DNA of 64,000 bases from Macrostomum lignano. Lineage: Eukaryota. Of the stretch, positions 17,644 to 20,600 are shown in pieces. The DNA lies in contig NIVC01003869.1 of the NCBI GenBank assembly GCA_002269645.1, positions 1-64,000 on the forward strand, read 5' to 3'. Position numbers and translations under genes: made by a program. How positions within the stretch are numbered: the first letter of the stretch is position 1; each line of letters opens with the position of its first letter. The notes under the pieces were generated by a model that saw only the letters and a program-made list of their open reading frames with translations, ran no database searches and was not told the origin of the DNA.

Positions 17644-20600
17644 ATGCTATCCGCCAAGAGTTTCACACGGCGTCGTCCACCAGCTGAACCGCCAGCGACC
17701 CCGTTGCAGATGCGGCAGCTCGCTGATCAGAAAAGTGCACCGTCCGCTGATGCTGAAGACGACCGCGGCGTTCCGACTGGCGACGACCGCGAAGCTCCAA
17801 CTGGCGGAGCCTTGACAGAGCGGCAGCTTCGCAGCCTCAGCTTCCAGGAGCTGCTGGAGCTCTGGCCCGATCCGCAGCGGGAGCTGCAGCTGCGGCTGGA
17901 TGATGTCGGAGGCGGAGAGCTGCTGAGCTGTCGGCTGCTGCACGCAGCGGTAGCAGCGGACAATCGGGACGGAGTTCGAGGCCTGCTGGAGATGGCGCCG
18001 GGCCTGGCTGAGCTGAGCAACTCCGTGAGGCTGCGGTGGGGTGACGGGTGGAGTGACGGGTGGATCGAATGATGGGTGGAGTGACGGGCGGATCGAATGA
18101 CGGGTGGAGTGACGGGTGAAGTGACGGGTGGAGTGACGGGTGGAGTGACAAGTGGAGTGACGGGTGTAGTGATGTGTGAAGTGATTGCCCCATTGAAAAC
18201 GAGGGTTAATATTGGGGGTTAATTTACCAATAGTCTAATGAAACAAATTAACTAATTATAACTAATAATGAATAATGTTACTTGACGTTACTTGACTTTA
18301 CGGAGCGTAAATTTTCGTTAATTTACGAGTTTGTTTAACCGAAATTAACCTACAAAGTGTCTGTGAATAATTAGCGTAAATTCGCTTTTTCGAAAGTTAA
18401 ACTGCGGTAAACTAACCAACCAAAAGTTACTTTTCGTTTATTTACTTTCAAGTTTAACCCTCGTTTTCAACGGGTGGTGTGGAGTGACGGGTGGAGTGAC
18501 GGGTGGAGTGACGGGTGGAGTGATGGGTAGAGTGACGGGTGGAGTGACGGGTGGATCGAGTGACGGGTGGAGTGACATGTGGAGTGACGGGTGGGGTAAC
18601 GGGTGGAGTGACATTTGAAGCGGCAATTGTAGTGACAGGTGGAGTGATAGGTAGAGTGAAATGTGGAGTGACATGTGGAGTGACATGCGGAGCGACAAGT
18701 ACATGTATAGTGCCAGGTGGAGTGATGAGTGGAGTGACGGACGGAGTGACGAGTGGAGTGATGAGTGGTTGGTAAATTGATGTTAAATTAACCAACCAAA
18801 AGTTACTTTCGTTTATTTACTTTCAAGTTTAACCCTCGTTTTCAACGGGTGGTGTGGAGTGACGGGTGGAGTACAGGTAGAGTGACAGAAAGAGTGACGG
18901 GTGGGTGCCAGTCCAGCTGCCGCCCCATCAGCTTCTGCCCTCCGCCCGCCTCCCTCAGCGCCGCGAGCTGCCGATCCACGTGGCCTGCCGGCTCAACCGC
19001 CCGCTTCCCGCGGCGCTGCTGCTGCCGGCGATGTCCCGGGAGGCCGTCAACTCGCTGGACGGCCGTGGCCGGGCGCCGCTGCACTGGGCGGTCGAGCTCG
19101 GGGAGGCCGACTGCCTGGCCGAGCTGCTGGTCAGCGACCTCTGCGACCTGGCGCTGCCGGACTCGGTGAGAGCCCTGAGGAATCTCTGCTTCTAGGGGCA
19201 GACCGGAAGTTGGGAGAGGCAGTCAAGCACTTACCGGAAGTGGGGAGAGACAGCATTGATCAGACCGGAAGTGGGGAGAGGCAGTCAAACGCAGACCGGA
19301 AGCAAATCCCAAATCCCAGTCGGGCAGGTCGGCCCTGGACTGCGCCAGAGAGGCGGGTCCGAAGGCTCGCGCCTGCCTGCGGCTGCTGGAGTCCGCGGCC
19401 TTGGCGGCGTCCGCCCTGGCGCCGCTGCGGCTGCGCCGATTGGAGCCGGCGAGCAGCCACGGGTGCCGCGACGGCGAGCCGCGCGCCTGGGGAGCCGCCT
19501 GCGACTCCGCGCTGCTGGCCAACAACTGCTTTGGGGAGGTGGAGTTTCCCGGCCTGGGAAACACCGCTCAGGTGAGTGCCTGTTGCAAGATTCATTGCTG
19601 TTGCTATAGCAACAAGTTTCATTGCTGTTGCTATGGAAACACTTTCCATTGCTGTTTCTATGGAAACACTTTTCAGTGCTGTTGCTATGGAAACACTTTT
19701 CAGTTCTGTTGCTATGGAAACACTTTTCATTTTTTATGTTATGGCAACACTTTCCATTGCTGTTGCTCTGGAAACACCTTTCATTTATGTTGCTATGGCA
19801 ACAATTTTACCATAACAATTAGCAACTTTTTCTATAGTGACACCGCTCATGTAAATTTTCGTTGCTATGGAAACACTTCTTATGTCAGTTACCATGGTAG
19901 CACGTCGTGGCATAACTGTTGTTACGGTAACACCTGCTCATTCTCGTTGCTATGGCAACCCTTCTAAGATGAGAGTTTCTGTTGCCATTGCCACTCCTCC
20001 CAGGTGATTGCCTGTTAGTGTGGTATCCCTACTCGGAGTACCTGTCACCATGGCAACAACATCCGCCCTCCCCACTCCCCAGTTCTGCCGCGTGGCCCAG
20101 ACCTGCTCAGACGCAGACATTTCGCAGTTGCTGCTTGGCTGCTGGGCCCTCAGCAGGCCCTCCCTGGTGCTCAGCGTGCACGGCAGCAACTGCGACAAAG
20201 CCTCCTTCAAGGCGGCTTGGCAGAAGGGCCTGTGGAAGACGGCAGCTGGCTCAGGTGAGCTTCATCGGGTGCTCTCGCTAATTATGGAGCTAATTATGCA
20301 TAAATTATGCTAATGAACCGCAGGTGCCTGGATCGTCACCGACTGCTGCTCCGGTCTGGCCAGAAAAACCGGCCAGGCGGCCAGGGACTTCTGCGACGCC
20401 TATGGCCCGGACAGTGTCCGAGCGATTGGGGTTTGCAGCTGGGGGCGCTCGGCCGGCCGGGAGTGTCTTCGATCTGAGAGCTTCGCTGTAAGCTGCGCTG
20501 TGATTGGCTGAGCTGTGATTGACTGGGCTGTGATTGGCTGCGCTGTGATTGGCTGCGCTGTGATTGGCTGGGCTGCGATTGGCTTAGCTGTGATTGGCTG

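Follow-up and report, generated by a model that had tools for sequence, protein, structure and literature searches.

Does a dense run of transcription factor sites inside an intron mark a regulatory element kept by selection, or does it reflect the way in which a repeat carrying such a site was copied? The question is raised by 64,000 nucleotides of the flatworm Macrostomum lignano (assembly GCA_002269645.1, contig NIVC01003869.1, positions 1 to 64,000 of the forward strand; hereafter, the window), where the third intron of the TRPM-like channel gene Mlig003066g2 is filled with tandem copies of a 27-bp unit that carries a 14-bp near-palindrome matching the X-box, the target of RFX factors. The initial annotation of this sequence had described about 13 X-boxes at 19600-20057, had seen in their conservation a hint of selection and had predicted expression in ciliated cells. 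We find that the array is indeed there and that its cores are excellent X-boxes, and we consider it to be, probably, a neutral, fast-turnover intronic minisatellite whose unit contains an X-box.

A tblastn search of the annotated protein (PAA49471.1) against the window showed that the intron in question is the third of the coding sequence (intron 3), the junction between exons 3 and 4 reading ...GLGNTAQ/FCRVAQ... in the protein and spanning GLGNTAQFCRVAQ. The region is organized as follows.

19320..19571, + strand: exon 3 of Mlig003066g2, 3' end ...FPGLGNTAQ (translation; tblastn of PAA49471.1 against the window)
19572..20082, + strand: intron 3, 511 nt, phase 0, CAG/GTGAGT...CCCCAG/TTC (translation; tblastn junction)
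19591..19806, + strand: young part of the array, eight homogeneous units in strict 27-bp register (Tandem Repeats Finder [TRF]; register print)
19807..19860, + strand: two strongly decayed units, without consensus X-box (register print; wrap-around alignment)
19861..20057, + strand: old, decayed part of the array, seven units with substitutions and spacer indels (register print; wrap-around alignment)
20058..20082, + strand: polypyrimidine tract and 3' splice site, AACATCCGCCCTCCCCACTCCCCAG (sequence)
20083..20254, + strand: exon 4 (FCRVAQTCSD...), where the TRPM SLOG/LSDAT domain begins (translation; Pfam; tblastn)

For 19591-19808, TRF reported a period of 27, 8.1 copies and 83% matches, with the consensus TTCATTGCTGTTGCTATGGAAACACTT. 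Printing the sequence in this register and aligning it to the consensus in wrap-around fashion showed that about 94% of intron 3 is one 27-bp repeat at graded ages, the only non-repeat sequence being 10-20 nt at the 5' splice site and the polypyrimidine tract of about 25 nt. Each unit of the young part consists of TTCATTGCT, the core GTTGCTATGGAAAC and ACTT; cores start at 19600, 19627, 19654, 19681, 19708, 19735, 19762 and 19789, the one at 19735 being broken (TATGTTATGGCAAC) and the one at 19762 carrying one mismatch. The two decayed units that follow read TTTACCATAACAAT with an AGCAAC half-site, and TTTTCTATAGTGAC. In the old part, where the spacers measure 13-21 nt and contain indels, cores were found at 19861 (GTTGCTATGGAAAC), 19888 (GTTACCATGGTAGC), 19918 (GTTGTTACGGTAAC), 19946 (GTTGCTATGGCAAC), 19981 (GTTGCCATTGCCAC, in the window copy only), 20014 (GTTAGTGTGGTATC, decayed) and 20044 (GTCACCATGGCAAC). 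With 14-15 units recognizable in all, 15-17 placed by the wrap-around alignment, and 9-12 consensus matches, "about 13" was a fair count. The units lie head to tail and their length falls within the 10-100 bp of a minisatellite. As a check on a dispersed, transposon-borne origin, the 17-mer of the spacer was searched with up to two mismatches in 823 kb, of which 373 kb were from M. lignano, and occurred only in the three genomic copies of intron 3.

The match of the cores to the X-box is excellent, as had been proposed. Allowing at most one mismatch, GTTNCYATRGNAAC gave 11 matches in the 64 kb, all of them within 19600-20057; dinucleotide shuffles scanned in the same way averaged 0.61 matches and never exceeded 3, a comparison that overstates significance because the array copies represent one duplicated 27-bp unit and not independent matches. 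The Caenorhabditis elegans consensus, GTHNYY AT RRNAAC (bioRxiv 10.1101/2020.08.21.260547), searched as GTHNYYATRRNAAC, matched nine times and nowhere in the window outside the intron 3 array, and the restricted Drosophila consensus, GYTRYY N1-3 RRHRAC (PMC2375033), matched 11 times, looser forms of it 12 times. The main core, GTTGCTATGGAAAC, coincides at every base with the X-box of the human DCDC2 promoter, which in electrophoretic mobility shift assays was supershifted by anti-RFX1 and anti-RFX2 and whose mutation lowers promoter activity (PMC5024701). Since the core is identical to this validated RFX1/2 site, RFX would probably bind the array cores in vitro; that M. lignano has such a factor can be expected from the presence of RFX transcription factors in all sequenced metazoan genomes (PMC2873420). 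We also considered whether the unit is unusually palindromic. The consensus unit has 5/7 symmetric pairs, as do 10 other arrays of the window and 26% of random 27-mers, and unusual palindromy was thus rejected.

The host gene was identified as a channel gene of the TRPM type, in agreement with the initial annotation, on the basis of Pfam matches to LSDAT_euk (8.6e-20), TRPM2-like (1.1e-20) and Ion_trans (1.2e-5), with an N-terminal Ank_2; the annotation of PAA49471.1, the g2 protein, lists the same families plus YVC1_C. An N-terminal SLOG/LSDAT domain, the TRPM homology region and an ion-transport domain with six transmembrane segments are thus all present. The window shows no difference from our locus L119, which carries gene copy g2, and a HMMER search retrieved a 98%-identical protein, BOX15_Mlig003066g1, with g2 and g3 as sister copies. 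The three copies are explained by the extensive redundancy of the M. lignano assembly, at 95% identity or more, which results from chromosome duplication (PMC5730564).

Comparison of the three copies revealed that the array turns over rapidly. Intron 3 measures 639 bp in g1, 511 bp in g2 and 891 bp in g3, its 5' tandem part holding 13, 8 and 22 units and the whole intron 11, 9 and 19 strict X-boxes, respectively. In g3, a 212-bp block of eight units has been duplicated and the stretch matching 19807-19860 is rearranged. Copy number is thus unstable between gene copies, and variants that break invariant positions of the X-box have been amplified: GATGCTATGGCAAC is present four times in g1, and GATGCT, GATGAT and GTTGAT are each present twice in g3.

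The old 3' part (19861-20057) is positionally conserved in all three copies and therefore allows motif and spacer to be compared between orthologous units. Variable columns amounted to 2/78 in the motif and 5/158 outside it (P = 1.0), a test of low power, as the copies are only about 2-3% diverged and differ by seven substitutions. The motif is thus not conserved beyond its surroundings in the gene copies, and the array is absent from the paralogues. The sole indel of this part, of 6 bp, creates the X-box at 19981, a site absent from g1 and g3. Equal divergence of motif and spacer is what the initial annotation itself had named as an outcome that would refute it, and its claim of selection on the motif is weakened by this result as well as by the motif-making indel and the amplified broken variants.

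Within the array, the same comparison gave a different picture, and here several observations weigh against neutrality, as do the arrays from metagenomes described below. Relative to the unit consensus, 30/210 motif positions (14%) and 43/195 spacer positions (22%) were substituted (Fisher P = 0.052), the X-box varying less than any other of the 27 cyclic 14-column windows. Wrap-around alignment of the window copy placed all indels in spacers, and 20/30 of the core substitutions in that copy are tolerated by the consensus, where 29-39% would be expected; this falls to 8/18 (P = 0.11) when each variant is counted once. At least nine intact X-boxes are moreover kept in all three gene copies. The units are, however, related by descent, and the alignment is anchored on their best-kept part; units in which the motif was lost are also found in the window copy, at 19735, 19807-19860 and 20014. 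The statement that spacers are more diverged than motifs therefore holds marginally within the array and fails between the gene copies. We regard the conservation within the array as a weak hint of constraint, not a demonstration of it, and no selection on the array X-boxes is demonstrable.

How surprising is it to find an X-box in such an array? The M. lignano genome contains 15% simple and tandem repeats (PMC5730564). The TRF output for the window comprised 115 rows, with a separate array in nearly every intron of the TRPM-like gene, and in 373 kb of M. lignano loci we counted 162 minisatellite arrays, or about 0.43 per kb, with 35% of the bases lying in TRF arrays. Words resembling transcription factor sites, such as AP-1 heptamers, are common inside the arrays of the window. 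A 27-bp unit will carry the strict consensus GTHNYYATRRNAAC with a probability of about 0.8-1.5e-4, so that at about 0.4 arrays per kb some 20-45 X-box-bearing arrays would be expected per assembly and about 0.003 per window, an estimate that excludes the other recognizable factor motifs that a reader could have spotted. Chance is thus sufficient to account for an array carrying an X-box. The initial annotation had held that a 14-bp motif is much less likely to match by chance than the shorter motifs nearby, an argument that overlooks that tandem repeats make up about 35% of the DNA sampled and that the thirteen motifs, being copies of one duplicated 27-bp unit, are one event and not independently retained sites.

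In the paralogous genes Mlig025325 and Mlig001812, an intron likewise interrupts the codon position of intron 3 and is filled by unrelated minisatellites. These introns are as follows.

L121, 13140-13838: 20-bp unit, 35 copies
L122, 12589-13289: 34-bp unit, 20.5 copies

Strict X-boxes numbered one in the Mlig025325 locus and none in that of Mlig001812, in 55 kb each. Among the TRPM-like paralogues, the position of the intron is thus conserved, but each gene fills it with a repeat of its own. The 10-mer ATGGCAACAA (20048-20057), corresponding to an X-box right half, is found about 25-45 nt upstream of the 3' splice site both in Mlig003066, where the distance to the AG is about 25-35 nt, and in Mlig025325 (L121 at about 13908-13917, ...aaaATGGCAACAAaaagcaacgtacttttttacag), and it may represent the ancestral seed of the repeat or an element of the branch-site region.

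These data are consistent with the following scenario. Near the 3' end of a short ancestral intron there would have been a sequence resembling an X-box or a half-site, and a 27-bp segment including that sequence would have been expanded by replication slippage or unequal exchange. Old units would then have decayed at the 3' end, as new units and multi-unit blocks were gained and lost at the 5' end. The anatomy of the array, its turnover in copy number, the equal divergence between copies and the unrelated arrays of the paralogues are observed; neutrality and slippage are what we infer from them. The observations can be explained without any effect of the array on how the TRPM-like gene is expressed. 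As a by-product, the array probably offers 9-19 good predicted RFX sites.

The same array could be read as an RFX-bound intronic enhancer or silencer that tunes the channel in ciliated sensory or epidermal cells, the cluster having been built by tandem duplication. The numerous consensus X-boxes in all three gene copies, the identity of the core to a human site that is bound by RFX1/2 and needed for promoter activity, and the existence of RFX factors across the metazoans are all in favor of such a role, as is the fact that the motif is the best-conserved window of the unit, with variation concentrated at positions 4, 6 and 11, which are degenerate in the consensus. Multiple X-boxes are also known to tune expression in C. 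elegans (PMC3245922). The array lies, however, in intron 3, 1.9-2.4 kb downstream of the ATG (17644), not close to the promoter, and functional X-boxes typically lie within 250 bp, and at most about 1.5 kb, upstream of the ATG (PMC1794439), a region of the gene in which, as far as the window extends, no strict X-box was found. In addition, the presence of an X-box without conservation across species does not predict control by RFX (PMC2375033). Motif and spacer are equally diverged between the gene copies, motif-breaking variants have been amplified, the number of units ranges from 8 to 22 without sign of constraint, and the paralogues have no such array. To our knowledge, TRPM is neither a known ciliome gene nor an established RFX target, and a search of the literature returned nothing on tandem X-box arrays, on RFX in connection with minisatellites, on RFX or X-boxes in flatworms, or on Mlig003066, its expression included. 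Taken together, we consider a regulatory role unlikely, though not so unlikely that it should be set aside.

A further reading concerns the origin of the array and would hold whether or not the gene is regulated, namely, that X-box cores seed minisatellites and that the intron 3 array belongs to a recurrent class. Possible causes are RFX-bound or nucleosome-free X-boxes that attract breaks or stall replication forks, or simply single X-boxes frequent enough to serve as starting material. A scan of metagenomes for two X-boxes (GTTGCYATGGNAAC) 8-20 nt apart retrieved 117 loci (L001-L117), against a chance expectation of about 2e-14 per base; the X-box pair was the only motif scanned, and any 14-bp palindrome might behave alike. 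X-boxes in pairs or tandem arrays recurred in about 100 of the contigs, with spacers that are unrelated and periods of 15-64 bp, including at least 10 distinct long arrays with periods of 17-64 bp and unrelated spacers (examples are L055, L004, L109, L042, L076, L077, L044 and L058). Among the 99 loci whose spacers are distinct, the core has T78/C70/A43/G7 at its unconstrained position 11, a preference that fits the Y of the RGYAAC half-site but neither base composition nor simple palindromy. The same pattern of paired X-boxes was scarce elsewhere, with three loci in 596 Gb of prokaryote genomes and none in viral contigs, collections which are weak controls as they contain few minisatellites. 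The core was less variable than the spacer in 9/9 metagenome arrays, a result to which we give no weight since it is biased by the way in which the arrays were found. Ten open reading frames (ORFs) neighboring the arrays were checked against Pfam and none proved to be a ciliary gene; the contexts were mixed and included some phage or prokaryote contigs. None of the roughly 100 other unique M. lignano arrays in 373 kb contained an X-box. The recurrence hints that X-box arrays may not be purely accidental. That minisatellites with a GTTRCY AT GGYAAC core form a recurrent class in animal genomes nevertheless appears doubtful to us, that X-box cores seeded the intron 3 array somewhat more doubtful still, and we treat the metagenome arrays as a lead rather than a finding.

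Two last readings place the signal in the RNA or in the protein. Self-complementary cores, or UGCU/YGCY words, could fold intron 3 or bind splicing factors and so affect splicing. The predicted fold of the intron 3 RNA has an energy of -150.8 kcal/mol (z = -5.4 relative to shuffles), each unit contributes two UGCU words in the form of TGCTGTTGCT, the distance from ATGGCAACAA to the 3' splice site is that of a branch point in both the window gene and the paralogue, and units 4 and 5 contain TTTTCAG, which resembles a cryptic acceptor. A strongly negative z-score is, however, automatic for any array of near-palindromes, and the fold has no covariation evidence behind it. Unit number is moreover free to vary threefold, and the paralogous introns are spliced with entirely different repeats, so that we regard a role at the RNA level as very improbable. 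The period of 27 nt also equals nine codons, which suggested a coding repeat or a retained intron: the frame of exon 3 remains open to 19967, an ORF (19401-19967) reads through the array with repeats of HCCCYGNTF, and the unit at 19918 differs from the consensus at four third codon positions, all four differences being synonymous. Substitutions are nonetheless distributed evenly over the codon positions (23/25/25), the array can be read without a stop in all three forward frames and in one reverse frame, and toward the 3' end the frame is broken by spacings of 28, 30 and 35 nt and by a stop at 19965. Since, in addition, exon 4 follows directly on exon 3 in the annotated protein and by TRPM homology, this reading was rejected as hardly credible.

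The neutral minisatellite that we favor calls for caution: where a genome is saturated with repeats, duplication of a single unit can mimic a dense cluster of binding sites, and motif counts inside one tandem array must therefore be counted as one event. If the array does recruit RFX, a minisatellite would have provided, in a single step, a strong cluster of identical sites, and a TRPM-type channel would be linked to the ciliated-cell program in a flatworm; as M. lignano is transgenic and amenable to RNA interference, this is cheaply testable. If the metagenome pattern survives control motifs, it would suggest that minisatellites can be promoted or stabilized by a factor-binding core. Should the recurrent class hold against control palindromes, either RFX-bound sites would be hotspots of tandem duplication or X-box clusters would have been selected repeatedly, and the TRPM intron array would be one member of the class, possibly wiring the channel to the ciliated-cell program.

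Several other features of the locus were recorded. A search of the window for known RNA families and tRNAs found none. A 41-bp minisatellite at 12239-12641, about 5 kb upstream of the ATG, contains 18 AP-1-like heptamers (TGACTCA), and intron 4 (20255-20323) contains CTAATTATG three times. In the coding exon 4, a perfect 13-nt inverted repeat is formed by TCGCAGTTGCTGC (20122-20134) and GCAGCAACTGCGA (20183-20195). A 22.5-kb satellite (38682-61223; 42-bp unit, 537 copies, 99% identity) lies within the last intron of the TRPM-like gene, which is flanked by exons 38213-38680 and 61283-61678. The homologous interval measures about 3.1 kb in g1, about 4.05 kb in g3 and 25 kb in the window, which represents either a difference of more than 20 kb in length between gene copies or a misassembly. 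Nested in a TRPM intron on the minus strand are two adjacent ORFs of 200 and 130 amino acids (27429-28436), where no gene is annotated in GCA_002269645.1; the 200-amino-acid ORF has a weak Pfam match to ASC (amiloride-sensitive sodium channel; E = 2e-4, below the curated cutoff), and the pair may correspond to an unannotated or decayed degenerin/ENaC-like gene. All three copies of Mlig003066 keep a single strict X-box, GTTGCTATGGTAAC, about 3.6 kb downstream of the gene (L118:32829; L119:57615, 1.3 kb past the window end; L120:39128), with no gene called adjoining it in the stretches examined.

Minisatellites with a common protein-binding core are known, among them those with the human minisatellite core and PRDM9-type hotspot motifs, and there are regulatory repeats such as that of the insulin gene. 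By analogy, the X-box cores embedded in unrelated spacers in the metagenomes may possibly be likened to PRDM9-type or insulin-type repeats, from which they differ in that neither hotspot activity nor an effect of allele length on expression is evidenced for X-box arrays. With the canonical X-boxes of RFX/DAF-19, the M. lignano array shares the 14-bp sequence itself, as defined by the C. elegans and Drosophila consensuses and by the human DCDC2 site. Canonical X-boxes are, however, single or, rarely, double, are mostly found in the 250 bp or so upstream of the ATG and are conserved between species, whereas those of M. lignano are 9-19 intronic tandem copies with no demonstrable constraint and no counterpart in the paralogues. 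In the C. elegans gene F25B4.2 (PMC3245922), the proximal X-box activates and the distal one represses, a precedent for additional sites modulating expression instead of just adding to it. F25B4.2 resembles Mlig003066 in having more than one X-box in one gene, but its sites are two distinct promoter X-boxes conserved between species and not a hypervariable 27-bp tandem array in an intron. The closest likeness is to the other intronic minisatellites of M. lignano and of other repeat-rich animal genomes, which are likewise made of head-to-tail units of 10-60 bp with a polar age gradient (PMC5730564). The array has in common with those of M. lignano the differences in copy number and the block duplications between gene copies as well as its being private to one gene, and the sole difference is that its unit holds a high-quality site of a well-known transcription factor.

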